Source: Octopus sinensis (lineage: Eukaryota). Taken from it: a DNA stretch of 10,449 nucleotides. Below are positions 1-10,449 of the stretch, in pieces. The stretch's first letter is position 1, and every line of letters starts with the position of its first letter. The notes beneath the pieces are model-generated. The model worked only from the letters and a program-made list of their open reading frames with translations, was not told the DNA's origin and did no database searches. The stretch spans positions 1-10,449 of the forward strand of contig NW_021827410.1 in assembly GCF_006345805.1 (NCBI RefSeq). The letters run 5' to 3'. Both the position numbers and the translations under genes were made by a program.

Positions 1-118
1 TATATGTAATAATAGGTTTTGTAAAAAATATCTCAGAATATCATACTATAGTCAAATTTACCTTCATTGATTACAGTAAGTATGCATTTGTAAAGGAGTT
101 AAAAATAAATCTGCATAA

Positions 119-147
119 GTATATTTATGTTTTATATTGGAATTTAG
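119..147 (+). other. Putative 29-nt spliceosomal intron (GTATAT...TTTAG)
   Basis: GT-AG bounded. Removal gives KSAINICEAFEEICSEIG, the same length as KNAIEISKLIKSIFCTIG in element B, but this needs two nearby 1-nt corrections. Confidence 0.55.
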
Positions 148-307
148 ATATTTGTGAGGCTTCGAAGAAATTTGTTCAGAAATCGGCTTTTGCGAGATTC
201 TACAAACAGATAATGGAACTGAGTTTAGGAATAAATATCTCGATTCTTTTTGCACGAAAAACAAAATCCAACATATTTACGGAAGACCAAATCATCCTCA
301 ATCACAA

Positions 308-335
308 GTAATGACACAATATTTATCTGTTTCAG
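308..335 (+). other. 28-nt spliceosomal intron (GTAATG...TTTCAG)
   Basis: Removal joins HPQSQ to GIVERFNQTL in frame and restores exact D35E spacing. The equivalent in copy A2 is 2668-2694 (27 nt). Confidence 0.85.
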
Positions 336-638
336 GGTATCGTGGAAAGATTTAATCAAACTTTAACACGAAATCTTTCAAAGCTGATGAGTGAAGAATC
401 AACTAAAAACTGGATCCAATTTATTAAACGAAGCACTTTTACATATAACACGACTATTCATTCTTCTATAATGAAACACCATTTAAAAAACAAAGAGGAG
501 TTTCTGGTATAAACATCGTCATTCATGATGATAAAAGTTTTTTTAATTTTTTTAATTTCAAAGAAAGTGAGTGTTCGGATGATTTTTATCATGTATCATC
601 AGAGGATATGGATGTAGAAAATATTCTAGATGTTTCAG

Positions 639-663
639 GTAAATTTTGAATAAAATATGCTAG
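639..663 (+). other. 25-nt spliceosomal intron (GTAAAT...TGCTAG)
   Basis: The unspliced frame stops at GKF*. The spliced frame continues open into the C-terminal domain. Conserved in A2 at 2349-2373. Confidence 0.7.
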
Positions 664-791
664 AAAACTTGTATGCTAGTGATTTTATATTGAATTTTAC
701 TCCACCTAATTTAAATTCACCATATTTTAAACGCATGAATAAAAAAATGAATGTTTCATCAATCGAAATACGATTTTTAATTGGGAGCGGG

Positions 792-815
792 GTATTTTTA
801 GTGAATAATTGTTAG
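792..815 (+). other. 24-nt spliceosomal intron (GTATTT...TGTTAG)
   Basis: Removal deletes an in-frame TAG and gives FLIGSG|VRVLKDF, matching INVGDSVIIRHD in element B. The donor is mutated to AT in copy A2 (2200-2223). Confidence 0.7.
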
Positions 816-1344
816 GTTAGAGTTCTAAAGGATTTTGGGACAAATCCTTCCCTAAGGCTAAACCGATTTGAATCCCCATATGGAGAACCTGCTGAAGTTG
901 TTCAATTTTGTCAAACAATCGACTAGGGTCTATTTTATTATTATTTTATTTAACAGATTAAAACAAGTTCAGGGAAGTCTAAAATAGTTAATATGAATCA
1001 AGTTAAAAAAACGTAGACGCTTATTTTAATAAATTTTTATTGTTGAAACGATTATTGATTAAAAATCAATGCAATTAAATTAATTATTAAATTTGACAGT
1101 CACCATGACAGGCATTATTATTTATTGACAGGTGACATGTAACCACCATGGGATGGGTAGCTCGTGTGGGACGCGACATATTAACTATTTACTTGAGTTT
1201 TTCGTAAAGATAGAATTTATTTTCGGTATGCCTCTTTTCCTAAACTTTTTATTATTCAAAAATAATTTTTTAAATAGATAACCGAAGGAGGAAAAACGAA
1301 GCTGAAGAAAAAACGGTCAGCTTAATAAGGTAATTAATTAAATC

Positions 1345-1444
1345 TTTTTTGTGTGTCGCTTTTTTTGTGTGTCGCTTTCTTGCCTGCCGCATCTCTGCCT
1401 GCCGCATTTCCGCCTGCCGCATCTCCCCCTGCCCCATTTCCGCA
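1345..1444 (+). repeat. Short tandem repeats inside the Helitron (TTTTTTGTGTGTCGCT x2; ~15-bp GCCTGCCGCATYTCY x4)
   Basis: Read directly from the sequence. Copy 2 has only one and two units respectively. Confidence 0.85.
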
Positions 1445-1523
1445 GTAAAAAATAAAAAAAGAAAAAAAGGAAATTACAAAGGAAAAATGAAAAAATTAAA
1501 TATAAAAAAATAAACCACAAAAA

Positions 1524-1725
1524 ATGAAAAAAAAAAAGTTTGCAATGACAATAAACAAGGCCCAGGGACAGTCATTAAAGGTAGTTGGGTTATTTTTAGA
1601 GTGAGTGCTTTTCACATGGACAGCTGTATGTGGGATGCTCGAGGGTAGGCAGAAGAGAAAATTTATTCATATATGCCAAGGAAGGACGGACGACAAACAT
1701 CGTTTATCAACAGGCGATAGAATAG
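1524..1725 (+). pseudogene. Helitron PIF1-like helicase C-terminal fragment (frameshifted)
   Basis: FAMTINKAQGQSLKVVGLFL / CFSHGQLYVGCSRVG motifs. A 2-nt deletion relative to copy 2 lies near 1600. Confidence 0.9.
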
Positions 1726-1846
1726 GGTTACATTAAACCAGGTAGTTTTATACATCTACATAAACTTATAGTTGTTTGATGAAACAGGCCCTCCGCAGGA
1801 GCTAGGTCGCGGTGAGCGAAGCGAGCTGCCGAGCTAGTATTTATTA

Positions 1847-3035
1847 TGTCGCGTCCCACACGAGCTACCCATCCCATGGTAGTTACATGTCACCTGTCAA
1901 TAAATAATAATGCCTGTCAAATTTAATAATTAATTTAATTCCATTGATTTCTAATCAATAATCGTTTCAACAATAAAAATTTATTAAAATAAAGCGTCTA
2001 CGTTTTTTTAACTTGATTCATATTAACTATTTTAGACTTCCCTGAACTTGTTTTAATCTGTTAAATAAAATAATAATAAAATAGACCTCTAGTCGATTGT
2101 TTGACAAAATTTGAACAAATTCAGCAGGTTCTCCATATGGGGATTCAAATCGGTTTAGCCTTAGGAAGGATTTATCCCAAAATCCTTTAGAACTCTAACC
2201 TAACAATTATTCACTAAAAATATTCCGCTCCCAATTGAAAATCGTATTTCGATTGATGAACATTCATTTTTTATTCATGCGTTTAAAATATGGTGAATTT
2301 AATTAGGTGGAGAAAAATTCAATATAAAATCACTAGCATCCAAGTTGTCTAGCATATGTTATTCAAAATTTACCTGAAACATCTAAAATATTTTCTACAT
2401 CCATATCCTCTGATGATACATGATAAAAATCATCCGAACACTCACTTTCTTTGAAATTAAAAAAATTTTTATCATCATGAATGACGGTGTTTATACCAGA
2501 AACTCCTCTTAGTTTTTTAAATGGTGTTTCATTTATAGAAGAATGAATAGTCGTGTTATATGTAAAAGTGCTTCGTTTAATAAATTGGATCCAGTTTTTA
2601 GTTGATTCTTCACTCATCAGCTTTGAAAGATTTCGTGTTAAAGTTTGATTAATCTTTCCACGATACCCTGAAACAGATAATATTGTGTCATTACTTGTGA
2701 TTGAGGATGATTTGTCTTCCGTAATATGTTGAATTTATATTTTATTTGTCTTGAAGATGTCTGTACAGGTTGGCCATTTAAAATATTGACTATAGTATGA
2801 TATTCTGAGATATTTTTTACAAAACCTATTATTACATATACAGGGGAATACATTTTAAAGAGGAAATGTTGAAAATTGAATAATAACGCTAAAAATATTA
2901 AATATGCCCACACGAGTAACGAATGATTAAACCACATTAATTATGACATCTGACAGCCAATGACCTCGTAAAAATGATTTATTGACAGGTGACATGTAGC
3001 CAGCATGGGATGCGTAACCACCACGGGACGCGACA
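1847..3035 (-). mobile_element. Ginger/TDD-like transposon family A, copy A2 (complete non-autonomous deletion derivative, 1189 bp)
   Basis: TGTCGCGTCCC...GGGACGCGACA termini, ~59-bp imperfect TIRs (1847-1905 / 2977-3035), and a 5-bp direct repeat TATTA at 1842-1846 and 3036-3040. Confidence 0.9.
2089..2853 (-). pseudogene. Integrase remnant of copy A2 (core up to the second catalytic Asp deleted)
   Basis: ORF-track pieces 2638-2937 (...HPQSQVMTQYYLFQGIVER) and 2363-2617 (SEESTKNWIQFIKRSTFTYNTTIHSSINETPF). Collinear with A1. Confidence 0.8.
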
Positions 3036-3429
3036 TATTAAAAGTAATCTTTAGGGAATGTTAAAGAGAAAATAAAATACAGAATAAAAAAATTTACAAA
3101 CTTAGAATGGAAAAATACTATACATTGTATGGTATACAATATATTGAAAAGATGTATAGATGGTATTGATTGCAAGAACTAAAGTCTAAATTCAGAGCCA
3201 TTTAGCAGCAAAAGAAGAGACCTATAAAAAATAGCGGAGCGAATGGTTTAAACTCAACCAATTAAATTCAAAATTCTGGAAAATTTACCACCGTTTAAAC
3301 GCAAGGGTTGGATATAATTTTGAAAGATAAAGTTGATCACTTTATTTAAAAAAGATGTTACACCTCTTTTCCGAAAACATCTGAAAAAGATCCAAGGAAT
3401 TAACCCTGAAAAATTAGTTTCATCACACA

Positions 3430-4320
3430 CTGTTGAAGATATAATAGGAAACTGGAAGAATCACTACAGTTTTTACTTATCAATAATGCGAAAATTATTA
3501 AAGATCAAATTGTTAGTACGATCAAAAAGTGCAAAAATAGTTCATCTCGCTATGACATGATTTTATTAGTTTTTCAATTCAAGTTGGTTTTTAGGCCACT
3601 TACCAAAATGTTTTGTGAATGATTTCAAAACCCGCGAGAAGTAAAAACAACTCTCTTTATTACAGACCAATTAATTTTTATTTGCACACTGGAAAGAATA
3701 AAGGGAATAATTGTGCTTAACAAATTTTCTAGCCACACAGAGAATAACCTCACTATTGGTCATAATTTCCTTGTGACCAAAAGATCATATGGAGATTGTC
3801 TTTATGAACTATGCCGTAAGATTGTTATTAACAGCTCGAATGATATTACACTAACTGCTATTTGTTTGGACATCAGGAATTTATTTGATAATGTAGGAAA
3901 TTTAGAACTTTTGGTCAGTTGCGAAGACAAAAAAACCTGAAATTTCTTAAAAGATAAAAACTTTAATTCCAAATTTACGTGGTGGATATTTCAAAACCAG
4001 CGCATTATAACTACCGTTTAATTATCTTCACTGAGGATATCTTAATAACAAATAGATAATGGAATTTTGATGATTCACAGCGAGTTGATCAAACTAATAT
4101 TTGAAATAAAATGCCGATACTCAAAAAAAGTCTATTTCTAGGACCATACACAGTTATGGATATATCTTGGAAGAAAAATAATAAAAAGCTAAAAGTCTAC
4201 TATCTGAATTTGCACAATTTTGAAATTAATTGCTTTGGAATGGTATTTCAAAATAATGGTAAGTTACTTAAAAGATATACAATTAGAAAAAAGAAAACAA
4301 ATTCATTTAAAAATGAATGC
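3430..4320 (+). pseudogene. Highly decayed non-LTR retrotransposon (LINE) reverse transcriptase remnant
   Basis: RT-like motifs occur in the expected order across shifting frames: IVSTIKKCKNSSSRYD (~3510), YYRPIN (~3660), RSYGDCLYELCRKI, AICLDIRNLFDNV (LDxxKAFDxV-like, ~3860), IDNGI (~4050). Many stops and frameshifts. Boundaries are approximate. Confidence 0.6.
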
Positions 4321-4323
4321 AAA

Positions 4324-4349
4324 TATAGTCAACCCTCTCTATAGTTAAC
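4324..4349 (+). repeat. Candidate terminal repeat of the Tigger/pogo element (TA|TAGTCAACCCTCTCTATAGTTAAC)
   Basis: Resembles TA|CAGTC... pogo/Tigger termini and lies ~130 bp past the transposase stop. No convincing partner was found at the other end. Confidence 0.45.
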
Positions 4350-5177
4350 AAAATGTTTAGTTCAAAACATTATCTTCACTATTGGCTATAGTGAACAAAA
4401 AAATAGAACAAGGAATCAAAATAACAATAAACAATATTAAAGTATAATTAAAAAGATTATTTAGAGATTTTAATCATGTAATCGGTGATTTTTTGAGAAT
4501 GATTAGTTTGATAATTTCTTAAAATTTTTTTGTAATTCTTATACCTTTTTTTGTACATCAAGAAACCATAATTCAAGCGCCTTCGAATATTCACTAGCTT
4601 CATATAGTGTTGGAACATAAATGTTTTCATTTTCCTCTTTAACTTAGTTTTGCTGTTTTAGTTTTTTCAAAAAGTTCTGTATAAAGTTTTCATCGTCAAT
4701 TTGATCAAAAGAATATCAAAATTTTCCTCATCTATTTCTTCTATTTCTGTCAGGTTCTGTACAGTCCCATTGCCATTATTGGTATAAAATTTAATCAAGT
4801 GTGCACATAGAAGTTGTCTGTGCCTGTCTTTGAATGATTTTATTAATCCTTGCACAAATGGTTGTAACTTCGATGTTGTATTTAAAGATAGTTTGCTGTT
4901 ACTAAACTCTAAATCATGTGAGTGTACAATAGCATTATTATGTAAAATTAGTAAAATTTTGTAAAATTATTTTTTTGTTCAATTCTATAAGCCATTTTGA
5001 GAAATAACCATAAGTAATCCATGCTTTTTTATTTGATTTACTCTACTAGTAAATTACTAATGAAATTTCTTCTTTCTTTGAAGCAGCGTGAATTTTTGGC
5101 TTTTCCAATACCAAATGGGTCAGGTTTTTTTCCAAAAAACATAAAAATTACTCTTTCTTTTATAGGTTTATTAAACA

Positions 5178-5906
5178 TCGAATCAACACCGTAGAACATG
5201 TTTGCTTGCCGGGAGGTCCACGGGGAGTGGAGAATGGTTGGAAGCCTTCCCGATCGGAAGCTTGGGGACTCTCTTGGATTCTGACACACTGCGAGTTGGT
5301 GTCTGTCTACGTATCGGTCTCAAAGTTTGTGAACCACACAAATGCCGCTGTGGTGCATCGATTGATCAATTTGGACTCCACCCTCTTTCCTGTCGAAAAA
5401 GCGCTGGTAGATTCCCGAGGCATTCAGCTCTCAACGACGTTATAAGAAGAGCTCTCGATTCAATCGGATTCCCATCAGTGCTGGAACCACCTGGATTGGA
5501 CCGAGGACATGGAAAACGGCCAGACGGGATGACTATCTTTCCGTTTTTGGAAGGAAAGCCTCTCGTATGGGATTCAACATGTTCCGACTCCTTGTCCAAG
5601 ACAAACATGTTGGAAAGTGCCTGCAATGCCGGCACAGCTGCGGATAAAGCAGAGGACATCAAGAAGAAGAAATATGATGGGCTCACCGATCGCTACGTTT
5701 TCCGGCCGGTTGCCGTCGAAACCCTGGGATCGATTGGGAAGGAGTCGTTGCGCTTCCTCATGTGTATTGGACGTCTCAAGACCCTGAGAACGCACAATCC
5801 TCTGGAGACGAGATGGCTCCTCCAGAACGTGTCCCAAGCAATAGTGAGGGGAAACTGGATCGCCATCAGTTCTTCTTCTTTTTCTGAATTAATTATATCT
5901 AATTAA
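5178..5906 (+). CDS. C-terminal zinc knuckle + restriction-like endonuclease domain of a CRE-like retrotransposon (5'-truncated, frame open)
   Basis: SGEWLEAFP..LG, CRCG..D..GLHPLSC (CCHC), RH, LEP.GL, KRPDG, VWDSTC, KKKKY, VAVETLG, AIVRGN. The frame is open from the junction at 5178. Confidence 0.85.
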   Translation, partial: SNQHRRTCLLAGRSTGSGEWLEAFPIGSLGTLLDSDTLRVGVCLRIGLKVCEPHKCRCGASIDQFGLHPLSCRKSAGRFPRHSALNDVIRRALDSIGFPSVLEPPGLDRGHGKRPDGMTIFPFLEGKPLVWDSTCSDSLSKTNMLESACNAGTAADKAEDIKKKKYDGLTDRYVFRPVAVETLGSIGKESLRFLMCIGRLKTLRTHNPLETRWLLQNVSQAIVRGNWIAISSSSFSELIISN

Positions 5907-5931
5907 CTTGAATTCCGAAAATCAAATCATT
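5178..5931 (+). mobile_element. 5'-truncated CRE-like (RLE-type) non-LTR retrotransposon, copy 1
   Basis: GC-rich insert flanked by the 13-bp direct repeat GGTTTATTAAACA (5165-5177, 5932-5944). Its removal restores the Tigger reading frame. No poly(A) tail. Confidence 0.88.
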
Positions 5932-6156
5932 GGTTTATTAAACAGATTTTTGTCCGAGTCAACAGCTAATGTTCGACAAAAGTATAAAAAAACATATCTA
6001 TTTTCGTCCAAATTAAAAAAAATTTTTGAACAATGTTGTTCTAATTTTCTATTGAGACTTTCTGTAAAATTTTGAATCAGAGAGGTTTCGAAAAATTAAT
6101 TTTTAGAGACATTGACTTCAAAAAGTATTCATTGATTGTAAATCCAAATAATCGTT

Positions 6157-6199
6157 TGTTCACCGGCCGTAGGATGGACGGCGCCGTTGAGTGGACACT
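6157..6199 (+). repeat. Left TIR of element B
   Basis: TGTTCACCGGCCGTAGGATGGACGGCGCCGTTGAGTGGACACT, a near-perfect inverse of 8382-8423. Contains the palindrome ACGGCGCCGT. Confidence 0.92.
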
Positions 6200-6318
6200 A
6201 AGCAATATTTTTAATTAAAAATATTTTTACAATAATAATCTCCATTAAAAAATCAAAAATTATTTAAATAATTTATTAAATATTCCTAATTTTTGTTTAA
6301 ATTAAGAATCGCGTGAGA

Positions 6319-7675
6319 ATGGTTTTGTTGTATCCTTTGTTGAAAAATTAATTAATATATTGAAACTGGCTTGATAGAAGATGAAACACAGAGGAAAGAA
6401 CGTTTTAAAATACGTTCTCTCTCAAAAAATTTTATTTATGAGCAATCTGTGCTTTTCATTGTGAAAAATGGTAAAAACTAAGATTCTTCACTATCGAACA
6501 AAATGAATTTAAGATGAAAACAATTGAGGTAAACATAAAATCAAATTTTGTAGGCTGAACACATTTAAACCATTTTGGTCGTGATAGGCTTTATTCCAAA
6601 CTCTGTGAAGAAATTTATCCGATTACGAGAAAAGAGGTCCTTACTGTGTGTAAGCCGGTGTGAAGTTTGCCAGGTTAATATTTATGAGCAATATAGGCGA
6701 TGCGTTGATGGCCACTAAACCAACTATTACTCCTATTATTGCTTATGAACCACGAGATCGTTATCTCATAGATCTAATTGACTTAAGAAGATATGCTGAT
6801 ATTAATGATGGGTATTCATGGGTATTCGTGATTTAATATTGTAGTTGTTAGTATTAATAGACTCATTTTCAAAATTTGGAGTCGTTGAACCTGCAAAGAC
6901 AAAAAATGCTATTGAAATTTCAAAATTAATAAAATCAATTTTTTGCACCATTGGACATCCAATTCTTTTGCATAGTGACAATGGAAAGGAATTTAGAAAC
7001 TCCTTGTTAGAGAATGTATGCAAGGAGTTTGGAACTAAACAAGTTTTCGGCAGGCCAAGAGCACCTTGGATTCAGGGCCAAGTAGAAAGGTCGCTTAAGA
7101 AAAATTAATTATATAGATTCAATCAATCTATAAAAAGATGGATATCGGCTACTAGTGCTACGAATGGAACATTTGGGAGATATTTGGATATTATTAAGAA
7201 AATTGTGTATGACTATAACACAACAAAACATGATACTACGAAACACAAACCATTTGACGTGTTTATGAGAATTACTAAAAACCAAACAATTCATAATAAA
7301 ATTAAATCACTTGAAATGTTTACTGCAGACGATATAAATGAAGAAATACTATACGAAGACATTACAGAAGAAAATACAGTCGCAATATTAGAACAGAGAA
7401 ATAATGTAGTAGAAAATTTAGAAAAAGCAGGAGCGAAAATGTCTAACAAAAGGAAATGGAAATTCGACGAAGAGGATATAAATGTCGGAGATTCTGTTAT
7501 TATCCGACATGATAGAGACGCAAATGTGAATAATAGGAAATATCCTCTTCACGATGAAATATCTTCAGAGAAATTTTATATCGTCGACAAAAAAAATAAT
7601 TTATGTGTGTTAAAAGATGAAAATGGAACAGAAATTGAATCCATTCACATTAGTAGACTCAAACGATTAGTTTAA
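6319..7675 (+). CDS. Integrase-type transposase (H2C2 zinc-binding, rve DD35E core, SH3-like C-terminus), five exons; 1-nt frameshifts in the 5' third
   Basis: Spliced reading ...KMKTIE|AEH(IL)NHFGRDRLYSKLCEEIYPITRKEVLTV.SRCEVCQ|AMR.MATKPTITPIIAYEPRDRYLIDLIDLRRYADINDGYSW|LLVLIDSFSKF...LHSDNGKEF...WIQGQVER|FNQSIKRWI...IVYDYNTTKHDTTKHKPF...NVGDSVIIR...IHISRLKRLV*. Open without any correction from 6708 to 7675 after splicing. The start codon at 6319 is tentative. Confidence 0.85.
6529..6553 (+). other. 25-nt intron (GTAAAC...TTGTAG)
   Basis: GT-AG bounded. Joins KTIE to AEH, just before the HxxxxH motif. A nearby 1-nt frameshift weakens the frame test. Confidence 0.7.
6674..6696 (+). other. 23-nt intron (GTTAAT...ATATAG)
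   Basis: CAG|GT donor directly after CEVCQ and a TAG|G acceptor. A further 1-nt correction near 6705 is needed. Confidence 0.65.
6822..6844 (+). other. 23-nt intron (GTATTC...TTGTAG)
   Basis: Removal joins DGYSW to LLVLIDSFSKF exactly in frame. The unspliced frame hits TAA. Confidence 0.88.
7090..7116 (+). other. 27-nt intron (GTCGCT...ATATAG)
   Basis: Removal deletes an in-frame TAA, gives the canonical GQVERFNQSIK, and fuses ORFs 6845-7108 and 7184-7675. Confidence 0.88.
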
Positions 7676-7738
7676 ATTTTTGGTTAATAAAATTTTAAAA
7701 ATTGTATAAAAAGTTTTTCAACTTAAAATAAGAAGCAA

Positions 7739-8002
7739 ACACACCGCGGCCGAAGGCCGCATAGGGGAATAGTTGGATTCCAAAAAAAATCCGGCCGTAG
7801 GCCAATTGGTTTAGGTTGGACTTTAAAAACTACACACCGCGGCCGAAGGCCGCATAGGGGAATTTGGATTCCAAAAAATCCGGCCGTAGGCCAATGGTTT
7901 AGGTTGGACTTTAAAAACTACACACCGCGGCCGAAGGCCGCATAGGGGAATAGTTGGATTCCAAAAAATCCGGCCGTAGGCCAATTGGTTTAGGTTGGAC
8001 TT
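7739..8002 (+). repeat. Three tandem ~88-93-bp GC-rich repeats with hairpins, inside element B
   Basis: Units start at 7739, 7832 and 7920. Each contains GCGGCC-GAA-GGCCGC, GGATT-CCAAA(A)n-AATCC, CCGGCCGTAGGCC and GGTTTAGGTTGGACTT. Confidence 0.95.
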
Positions 8003-8381
8003 ACTACCTGAAAGCCTAAGGCTGGATAAGAAGTAATACGTGTGCAGCAATTAAGGTTTGGTTAGGGTTCCCTTTAGAAATTTGTACTGGTCATCTCTAA
8101 AATTGCTGTTAGGATACCAACGTCTATTTTATTTAATAAATTTTACAAATAAATTCGATTTTATAACTATTAAAAAGTATTATTTTAAAATGGTAAACCT
8201 CGAAATATAATAAACATTATGATTTTTAATCAATAATCGTAGAAAAAACGGTGTGGTTGGTTTGTTAGCTCTCTTATTTTCTCAAAAGTCACCAAATTCA
8301 TCGAAAATAGGCTTAAAATGGGACTTGGAAAAAATTAAGGTATGTTTTATATGAGCAAATTGAAATAAATGAGATTTTGAA

Positions 8382-8423
8382 AGTGTCCAACGAACGGCGC
8401 CGTCCATCCTACGGCCGGTGACA
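8382..8423 (-). repeat. Right TIR of element B
   Basis: AGTGTCCAACGAACGGCGCCGTCCATCCTACGGCCGGTGACA followed by the TSD TCGTT. Confidence 0.92.
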
Positions 8424-8836
8424 TCGTTTTTAACGAACCATTCAAATATATCTCTGTCGAATGGGTGAGACTTGGGCAAGTAAATTTTCTTCTTTTTTTG
8501 GTCATTATGAAAAGTTATTATTCCCACAGAATTCTGTTTATGCAGCCCAGAAAAACGTTGAAATAAAGGGTAAATCACGCTGTGTAATGTCTATTTTTAT
8601 GATAAAATTCGATAATTTCCTTCTTTTGAAAAAATGACAAACGTTTTCGATTATCCACCATGCTAACAACTATAGAACTTGTAATTTATTCATTTTAAAG
8701 AATTTTAAATTTACAGATGTAAAAATATTAAATTCAATATTTTTATGTTCACAAAAATTTGAAGTTCACTATTTTTAATTCTTTAACAATTTTCATATTA
8801 TTAGAAGTAAATGATTGTTTCAACTATATTTTAGAA

Positions 8837-9453
8837 CTAGCTCGGCAGCTCGCTTCGCTCACCGCGACCTAGCTCCTGCGGAGGGCCTGTTTCATCAAAC
8901 AACTATAAGTTTATGTAGATGTATAAAACTACCTGGTTTAATGTAACCCTATTCTATCGCCTGTTGATAAACGATGTTTGTCGTCCGTCCTTCCTTGGCA
9001 TATATGAATAAATTTTCTCTTCTGCCTACCCTCGAGCATCCCACATACAGCTGTCCATGTGAAAAGCACTCACTCTCTAAAAATAACCCAACTACCTTTA
9101 ATGACTGTCCCTGGGCCTTGTTTATTGTCATTGCAAACTTTTTTTTCATTTTTTGTGGTCTATTTTTTTATATTTAATTTTTTCATTTTCCTTTGTAATT
9201 TCCTTTTTTTTCTTTTTTATTTTTTGTTTTTTACTGGCGGAAATGGGGCAGGGGGAGATGCGGCAGGCAAGAAAGCGACACAAAAAAGATTTAATTAATT
9301 ACCTTATTAAGCTGACCGTTTTTTCTTCAGCTTCGTTTTTCCTCCTTCGGTTATCTATTTAAAAAATTATTTTTGAATAATAAAAAAGTTTAGAAAAGAG
9401 GCATACCGAAAATAAATTCTATCTTTACGAAAAACTCAAGTAAATAGTTAATA
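8837..9453 (-). mobile_element. Non-autonomous Helitron, copy 2
   Basis: Inverted near-copy of 1179-1837. Minus-strand 3' CTAG at 8837-8840 followed by T. It may extend beyond 9453. Confidence 0.85.
8949..9149 (-). pseudogene. Helitron PIF1-like helicase C-terminal fragment (frame open)
   Basis: FAMTINKAQGQSLKVVGLFLESECFSHGQLYVGCSRVG, the helicase motif V-VI region. Confidence 0.9.
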
Positions 9454-9563
9454 TTTTTACGCAAATTCTTCTGATTGCGCGTCAATGTGGTAGGTGGTAA
9501 ATTGTGTTAATGGTTGGCTAATGTGGTTTTCAAACTATCAAAGTGTTTTTCAAAATCTGTTAA

Positions 9564-9565
<2 letters not shown>

Positions 9566-9594
<29 letters not shown>

Positions 9595-10112
9595 TACAAA
9601 CAAGACAAAAATTACAGATAGCTAAGTTAGTTAAAGGCCTCACGAGACACCCGACCAGCCGCGCGAATGGCGAAGACGTTCCCTCGGATCACAGCAATCG
9701 ACAGACGTTCCAGGAGCCAAGAAAAACTCTTGGATCGTGACTAGTCCTTGAAATCCGTCGACCGAGCGAGCGAAGGAAGCGGAGTGTCTTGGGACCGAAG
9801 ATCCCGGAGGACTCCAAGGCAATGGAGTAGTAAAGAGCAGCGAGTTGGACAGGTGGCCGTACTTGAGAATCTTTCGCTCCTCGGCCTGCCTGGAAGCGTG
9901 CCCAGGATTGGCGGCGGACAGCGCGAGATTTCCCAGCGAGAACGTTTCCGAGCAGGTAGAATCCCAAATAAGGGATTTCCCCTGCTCGTAGGGGAAGGTG
10001 GACATGCCGTCAGGCGTTTGCCATCCCCTCTATCCAATCCAACAGGTTCAAGGATAGACGGGATGCCTGCTGAGGCGAGGGCTCTCTGTACGACTGAGTT
10101 GAGTTCAAAGTG
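9566..10112 (-). mobile_element. 5'-truncated CRE-like (RLE-type) non-LTR retrotransposon, copy 2 (different family, frameshifted)
   Basis: LNSVVQRALASAGIPSILEPVGLDRGDGKR / DGMSTFPYEQGKSLIWDSTC / IALESSGIFG / WLLERLSIAVIRGN across three frameshifts; stop at 9627-9629. A 25-T run at 9564-9588 is the poly(A) tail. 21-bp TSD GTTTTTCAAAATCTGTTAATT at 9545-9565 and 10113-10133. Confidence 0.9.
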
Positions 10113-10449
10113 GTTTTTCAAAATCTGTTAATTGCACACTCTATTCAAAGTCGTGCAATCTGTGATTGCACATTCTGTCAAAGTCAATATGATAATAGCT
10201 TTAATTTGATTCATGGTCGATAATGATATAGCATTTAATTTTAAAGAGAAAAACATAGGATGAATTGAATTTCTTTATCGCGAATAATTGGGAGTTCATC
10301 ATTGTTAATATTCTCGCTGTCGTTTTCATCAAGGATATTCTTAATACGTGAGATTTTTGCCTTGAAGGTTTTAATGGACCTCATCATGAATGTCGAGGAC
10401 ATTCGCGTTGTTCATTTTAATCAAAATGCAGAAAATATTTTTTGATTTT

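Follow-up and report, generated by a model that had tools for sequence, protein, structure and literature searches.

Which kind of genome can carry a transposase gene divided by four segments of 23 to 27 nt, and what are these segments? The question is raised by contig NW_021827410.1 of the assembly GCF_006345805.1, filed under Octopus sinensis, of which we analysed positions 1 to 10,449 on the forward strand (hereafter the window, i.e., this whole stretch of 10,449 nucleotides). Positions 6157–8423 of the window are occupied by a transposon of the cut-and-paste type, ~2.3 kb long, which an initial annotation had read as a complete Ginger-like element encoding, once four unusual introns are removed, a single protein of ~420 amino acids (aa). 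According to our analysis, the element is most probably (with a probability of about 0.7) a defective member of a family of small transposons of the Ginger2/TDD kind, residing in the genome of a dicyemid and bearing in its integrase gene the ultra-short introns typical of that host. The coordinates of all features are collected in Table 1.

Anatomy of the element and of its integrase gene

The ends of the transposon are terminal inverted repeats (TIRs), whose 40-nt core is 93% complementary, with one additional base at the left tip. The tips read TGT...ACA, and the 5-bp direct repeat TCGTT stands on both flanks as a target-site duplication (TSD), which upholds the initial description of a complete element; no empty-site paralogue of the insertion was found among the compared loci. 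Between the TIRs lies a single gene on the + strand, running from an ATG at 6319 to a TAA at 7673–7675, and it is the only rve gene there.

This layout is not peculiar to the window. The closest public proteins are intact single open reading frames (ORFs) found on short SRA/metagenome contigs (P0001, 413 aa; P0003, 430 aa; P0006, 463 aa), the window product being 49% identical to P0001. The latter is encoded, as an intact 413-aa ORF, within an element of 2272 bp (L001) with the tips TGTCACCG and TGTCA at both ends; since its tips and layout are like those of the window element, the architecture is a property of the family. Moreover, a 1764-bp element (L011) has TIRs of its own, with the tips TGTGA/TGTCA, and is flanked by a separate 5-bp duplication, AATTA; the length of the TSD is thereby confirmed for the family. 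The family thus spans a size range of ~1.8–2.3 kb.

The window copy is defective and cannot encode the full enzyme in its present form. Less the four segments (98 nt), the span from ATG to stop measures 1259 nt, a number not divisible by three, so that their removal does not yield the single protein first proposed: with the exons joined unaltered, the longest open run is formed by the last 312 codons, which hold a DD35E core and an SH3-like barrel (312 open codons would arise by chance with a probability of ~2e-12 at this base composition). The damage is confined to the first ~110 codons, i.e., the zinc-finger region, where at least three stops are found, three of them within the first 25 codons after the ATG and both TAA and TGA being represented, along with about four frameshifts relative to the intact relatives (3–5 depending on the relative, in a frameshift-aware alignment of the spliced model), all of them in the N-terminal third. 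Errors of the assembly could account for some of these breaks, which sit in short runs of a homopolymer or repeat. Further hidden introns behind the N-terminal frame changes were considered and rejected, as no GT..AG segment with a suitable length fits and the intact relatives are collinear there.

Regarding the domains, the initial reading of the protein as H2C2–DD35E–SH3 holds for its last two parts. The rve domain is recovered by Pfam from the spliced translation, the catalytic residues D29, D90 and E126 are invariant in the family alignment (hence DD35E), and the 312-aa product matches the integrases of the prototype foamy virus (PFV; E 9.5e-14) and of Ty3 among the structures of the PDB. 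The barrel is predicted from an AlphaFold model of the exon-5 product, of modest confidence overall (mean pLDDT 69), with block means mostly of 60–89 in the barrel itself; in Foldseek, its top match is the Ty3 integrase 7q5b (E 7e-5), with the C-terminal domains of retroviral integrases, Tudor and SH3 domains ranking next. As for the H2C2 finger, no N-terminal piece of the window copy gave any Pfam match, and the finger is recognisable solely by eye and via the relatives, in which it is detected as PF17921 with nearly invariant H, H, C and C columns.

The element also contains a tandem array. The 11-nt core of the TIRs, CCGGCCGTAGG, has five exact copies in the window, of which the TIRs hold two and the array three, vs. 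0.01 expected, and its internal copies are probably extra binding sites for the transposase. Each 88-nt unit holds, besides a variant of the TIR core, a perfect GC-rich hairpin (GCGGCC-GAA-GGCCGC), and a sub-period of 48 nt was also called by Tandem Repeats Finder (TRF). Scans of the window with Rfam and for tRNA genes, aimed at these hairpin-rich repeats, returned no match.

Table 1. Features of the transposon and of its flanks (positions in the window).
Feature	Position	Strand	Basis and remarks
Left TSD copy, TCGTT	6152..6156	.	Direct reading of the sequence
Left TIR, tip TGTTC	6157..6199	+	Repeat search, 43 nt; includes the core CCGGCCGTAGG
Integrase/transposase gene, five exons under the splice model, broken	6319..7675	+	Frame and homology analysis
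Putative intron 1, 25 nt, GT..AG	6529..6553	+	L011: 25-nt GT..AG insert at the same codon position; not in P0001, P0003, P0006
Putative intron 2, 23 nt, GT..AG	6674..6696	+	L011: 30-nt GT..AG insert at the same codon position; not in L009, L006
Catalytic D, D, E codons	6771–6773, 6977–6979, 7085–7087	+	D29, D90, E126 of the window product
Pfam rve match, spanning intron 3	6801..7066	+	E 1.9e-11; residues 39–119 of the 312-aa product
Putative intron 3, 23 nt, GT..AG, phase 0	6822..6844	+	Position filled in L009 (27 nt) and L011 (25 nt)
Putative intron 4, 27 nt, GT..AG, phase 2, in-frame stop inside	7090..7116	+	L009: 26-nt GT..AG insert at the same position and phase
Predicted C-terminal small beta-barrel, SH3/Tudor-like	7493..7666	+	AlphaFold model of the exon-5 product, Foldseek
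Tandem array, 88 nt x 2.9, 95% matches	7739..8002	+	Tandem-repeat search
Right TIR, tip TGTCA on the reverse strand	8382..8423	-	Repeat search, 42 nt
Right TSD copy, TCGTT	8424..8428	.	Direct reading of the sequence

The four short segments and their counterparts in relatives

GT..AG bounds characterize ~0.24% of all 21–30-nt stretches of the element, so that finding them in all four segments by chance has a probability of ~2e-8, an estimate that already allows five placements per insert. Counterparts of the segments were found in two other copies, L009 and L011, even though their exons share only ~61–68% nucleotide identity with those of the window. L011 has GT..AG inserts at positions 1, 2 and 3 and an additional one (26 nt) in its C-terminal domain, while the two inserts of L009 are located right behind the same Trp codon as intron 3 and within the same Arg codon as intron 4, position 2 being empty. 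Positions 1–4 are consequently common to the window and L011, and positions 3–4 to the window and L009; GT..AG bounds combined with a length of ~20–30 nt characterize 4/4 inserts in the window, 2/2 in L009 and 4/5 in L011.

The lengths of these inserts differ between the window, L009 and L011 (23/27/25 nt at position 3 and 27/26/25 nt at position 4) by non-multiples of three, and the flanking exons are nonetheless in frame with the intron-less relatives. When introns 3 and 4 are removed, the junctions are gapless against 10 relatives, and the removal of intron 4 restores the invariant motif GQVERFNQ. Introns 1 and 2 match L011 in position, in a region where the frame is disturbed by other breaks. 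Taken together, the shared codon positions, the length differences and the collinear exons are what one would expect had the segments been taken out of the mRNA during the divergence of the sub-family, and not what insertions specific to one copy would produce. The four segments thus behave as spliceosomal introns and would be spliced out, as the initial annotation had proposed; the comparison with L009 and L011 finds them shared between copies, with largely conserved GT/AG bounds. That introns are known in Ginger elements, as also stated there, agrees with the one to four introns described in Ginger1 genes (PMC2836005).

A profile search extended the family to "Pro-Pol polyprotein" fragments of two microsporidia, Nosema granulosis and Dictyocoela muelleri, and to three proteins filed under Octopus sinensis (P0016, P0028 and P0030). 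P0016, which is 397 aa long and intron-less, bears the NCBI name "KRAB-A domain-containing protein 2-like", while P0028 and P0030 are NCBI models that run directly into short inserts; the suspicion that gene finders mishandle such families, which end up under a KRAB-A name or as fragments entering introns, was therefore justified. L009 and L011 are themselves damaged copies, and L009 is further interrupted by ~1.7 kb past the start of exon 5 (~6480–8100 of L009), a stretch that may be a nested insertion or else a long intron. Finally, the intron-less and otherwise well-kept copies L006, L007 and L008 (ENA metagenome) and L003 (Nosema granulosis) have one or two in-frame stops each, across which homology continues. 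The stops in such copies are probably an ascertainment effect, the protein database holding just the copies with a long remaining ORF.

Host of the window

The window shares DNA with VCDQ01000492.1, a contig of 1.29 Mb filed under Octopus sinensis (GCA_006345805.1): positions 5175–5883 are 97.5% identical over 709 nt to one part of this contig (L010), positions 9616–10107 are 89.7% identical to another (L013), and P0016 and P0028 are located on it as well. In L013 (35–1703), the last ~550 codons of a clathrin heavy chain gene are packed into 1.7 kb and include five GT..AG segments of 25, 24, 26, 25 and 21 nt; with the first four removed, the alignment to residues 1148–1604 of bovine clathrin is nearly gapless (E 6e-142). 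A housekeeping gene with introns of 21–26 nt implies that VCDQ01000492.1 does not belong to an octopus-type genome. In animals, introns of less than 30 bp are reported only for dicyemids and myxobolid myxozoans, with splice signals cut down to GTa...AG (PMC13644364), and the median intron of dicyemids measures 27 bp (PMC6543705). One dicyemid, Dicyema japonicum, inhabits the kidney of O. sinensis, from which it was collected, and 49% of its genome consists of repeats (PMC6736024). We infer that VCDQ01000492.1 is dicyemid DNA and, by way of the shared repeats, that the window is too. At face value, introns of this size might seem unusual, as was first thought, but they are extreme just when the host is ignored and are the norm in a dicyemid-type genome, so that no new splicing phenomenon has to be invoked.

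A second contig filed under Octopus sinensis, VCDQ01011016.1 (L011/L012), also appears to be dicyemid DNA. On both contigs, NCBI models skip or read through tiny introns (the 1380-aa clathrin, LOC115227152 and LOC115228165). Beside L011, a serine carboxypeptidase (S10) gene is found at L012 14410–18147 (-), for which the NCBI model has 217 aa over 3.7 kb. Part of this gene is collinear, in ~870 nt, with residues 136–417 of yeast carboxypeptidase Y (CPY); this part is interrupted by stops and by a single change of frame, for which GT..AG introns do not account, and the gene may be a pseudogene. Compact as it is, the gene is ambiguous evidence on the host, neither helping nor hurting the dicyemid reading.

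Two other hosts were considered and rejected. A ciliate with a variant genetic code, such as Paramecium or Euplotes (with TGA for Cys/Trp or programmed frameshifting), does not suit 312 codons that use CAA/CAG for Gln and are devoid of in-frame TAA, TAG and TGA; in addition, the TAA at the end of the gene matches the end of the relatives, and TAA as well as TGA occurs among the N-terminal stops. A microsporidian, to which the Nosema granulosis match might point, is at odds with the 97.5%-identical DNA shared with an "octopus" contig and with the intron-less state of the Nosema copy.

The other repeats of the window also bear on its origin. A second integrase family is represented by two inverted copies, at 264–1187 (+) and 1838–2736 (-), which share 94.5% identity. 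In both copies, HPQSQ and GIVER are separated by a GT..AG insert (308–335 (+), 28 nt; 2668–2694 (-), 27 nt), at a codon that differs by a few positions from that of intron 4 of the main element, and the minus-strand copy has additional frame breaks. The presence of this 28/27-nt insert supports the dicyemid reading of the window. Two retroelement-like fragments, at 5175–5906 (+) and 9616–10131 (-), reach ~51% GC in a window otherwise of ~30% GC. One of them holds a 234-aa ORF. Protein relatives (44–63% identity) are common in ENA assemblies; the few named matches are from arthropods, and Pfam found no match in them. An inverted repeat pair, at 1178–1838 and 8836–9454, is 90.8% identical over ~660 nt, which places the main element within a patchwork of repeats.

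The strongest competitor, which we nevertheless regard as improbable, is that the window is true germ-line nuclear DNA of the octopus, into which the element and the second integrase family were horizontally transferred from a dicyemid. In such a genome, introns of 23–27 nt would be unspliceable, so that the copies would have been dead on arrival and the introns would mark their origin. Indeed, the sole named public sequences sharing the repeats of the window are filed under Octopus sinensis, relatives of the element in the parasites Nosema granulosis and Dictyocoela muelleri hint at movement between parasites and hosts, and the window copy is broken. Against a transfer speak the clathrin gene, whose five tiny introns are not octopus-like and lie on the same 1.29-Mb contig, the recurrence on VCDQ01000492.1 of at least three other repeats of the window, and the short GT..AG insert of the second integrase family; several independent transfers would be required.

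Alternative readings and comparison with known systems

Could the segments be something other than introns? Small copy-specific insertions in a decaying pseudogene would be in keeping with the plain decay of the first third of this copy and with the lack of the segments in the closest intact relatives (P0001, P0003, P0006 and P0016) and in the microsporidian copy. This is very unlikely, however, given the GT..AG bounds of all four segments, the same codon positions filled in two copies as diverged as L009 and L011, the length differences that leave the exons in frame and the 312 intact codons downstream. It is slightly less likely still that the locus is a transposase-derived host gene, like GIN1, KRBA2 or SCAND3. 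A host gene would account for the introns, which are conserved among paralogues, and for the long intact C-terminal ORF, and one relative does have a KRBA2-like NCBI name; yet the gene lies between matched TIRs with a TSD, its N-terminal third is broken, copies at other loci come with TIRs and a TSD of their own, and several diverged and damaged copies exist. The least likely of all is a fragment of a long terminal repeat (LTR) retrotransposon or of a Polinton, in spite of the retroviral and Ty3 integrases being the best matches of solved structure and of relatives named "Pro-Pol polyprotein" in their sources, because the ends of the element are inverted and not direct, the integrase is the sole gene in 2.3 kb, two relatives share the compact architecture, no reverse transcriptase, RNase H, protease or polymerase was found, and the TSD measures 5 bp vs. 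6 bp in Polintons (PMC6839031).

We therefore return to a Ginger2/TDD-kind element of a dicyemid, against which some observations weigh. Concerning the family, the left tip TGTTC deviates from TGTNR at base 5, the TIRs (40–43 nt) fall a little short of the range published for Ginger2 (45–297 bp), and no TSD was found around L001, the contig of which may be chimeric. Concerning the introns, the 25-nt insert of L011 at position 4 is without GT/AG, and, if intron 2 is given its GT..AG bounds, the frame of exon 2 does not continue into exon 3. Concerning the host, the link between the window and dicyemids is an indirect one, through shared repeats and a shared transposon family.

Under the dicyemid reading, and by analogy with Ginger2/TDD and retroviral integrases (PMC2836005), a full-length integrase, with its H2C2 finger, DD35E core and SH3-like barrel, would bind the TGT-tipped inverted ends and probably also the internal copies of the end motif, before excising the element and joining it into a target with a 5-bp stagger. 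The host would be a dicyemid kidney parasite of Octopus sinensis, part of the genome of which is publicly filed as octopus. In this parasite, nearly all introns would have a length of ~21–30 nt, the transposase gene of the sub-family would have acquired four to five of them, and the host spliceosome would remove the four ultra-short introns (five in relatives) from the primary transcript.

If this is correct, Ginger2/TDD elements gain a host phylum and a compact lineage with a 5-bp TSD, relatives of which also occur in microsporidia of amphipods and on SRA/metagenome contigs. At least two contigs of an assembly annotated by RefSeq as Octopus sinensis appear to be dicyemid, with gene models that are wrong at tiny introns. 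Furthermore, intron-bearing and intron-less sister families in one genome would provide a natural series on the gain and loss of ultra-short introns. The absence of the introns from the closest intron-less relatives, including one on the same contig, marks them as gained or lost within particular lineages and not as ancestral introns that have become shorter. A tentative proposal, to which we give somewhat less than even odds, is that insertions within dicyemids supplied this lineage of transposons with four to five new ultra-short introns; were it true, the intron-less sister family on the same contig would turn it into a multi-copy and dated record of introns being gained, in an animal for which intron shrinkage alone was known. 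Our literature search found no paper on Ginger-like elements (or a Ginger2/TDD-like lineage) in dicyemids, on sister families with and without introns next to each other, or on dicyemid DNA and mis-modelled dicyemid contigs in the octopus assembly.

With respect to known systems, the element fits the Ginger2/TDD kind and not Ginger1, an assignment made from structural features and from the KRBA2-like name of P0016, the integrase of KRBA2 being derived from Ginger2 (PMC3575427). Like Ginger2/TDD elements, it is a cut-and-paste transposon of ~2–3 kb, bounded by TIRs that enclose a single transposase gene (the same layout being found in L001 and L011), with TGT...ACA tips resembling LTR ends; its right end, TGTCA, fits TGTNR. 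The transposase of this kind combines an H2C2 finger with a DDE core and has no YPYY or GPY/F motif. The core is present in the window, the finger region of which is broken, and the H2C2 half is seen in the relatives; in the window product and 11 relatives, GP[YF] does not occur at all and YP.Y occurs once, in a single relative. The 5-bp TSD of the window and L011 (TCGTT and AATTA) has the TDD-type length, TDD-4/5 having TGT tips and a 5-bp TSD (PMC2836005), whereas metazoan Ginger2 elements have a 4-bp TSD at RTATAY. Also unlike published Ginger2/TDD elements are the internal array of the TIR core and the four to five ultra-short introns, and Dicyemida are not among the published host phyla.

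Ginger1 (PMC2836005) shares with the element the integrase-type transposase, the TGT tips and, in some families, one to four GT-AG introns, but its hallmarks, i.e., a 4-bp CCGG/CCGT TSD, YPYY and GPY/F motifs, a protein of 500–800 aa and often additional Ulp1, OTU or PHD domains, were not found in the element, the 5-bp TSD of which is AT-rich or mixed in composition. The genes KRBA2 and SCAND3 (ZBED9) have an integrase core of the Ginger2 clade, which the name of P0016 recalls (PMC3575427); these are single-copy host genes devoid of TIRs and fused to KRAB or SCAN domains, whereas the element is bounded by TIRs and a TSD, multi-copy and decaying. GingerRoot and Polinton/Maverick elements likewise have a transposase related to the Gypsy integrase. 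The former differ in their 6-bp TSD, TA...TA tips and TIRs of 100–150 bp (PMC6839031), vs. 5 bp, TG...CA and ~42 nt here, and the latter in their 6-bp TSD (PMC6839031), their size of 15–20 kb and their polymerase and capsid genes, the element being without Polinton features. Finally, the putative introns differ from other dicyemid introns (Ogino 2010; PMC6543705; PMC6736024; PMC13644364) in residing in a transposon gene and in being absent from its closest intron-less relatives, but they share with them a length of 21–30 nt, GT(a)...AG bounds with little else conserved, an AT-rich composition and, in the sole in-frame (3n) intron of the element, the presence of a stop.

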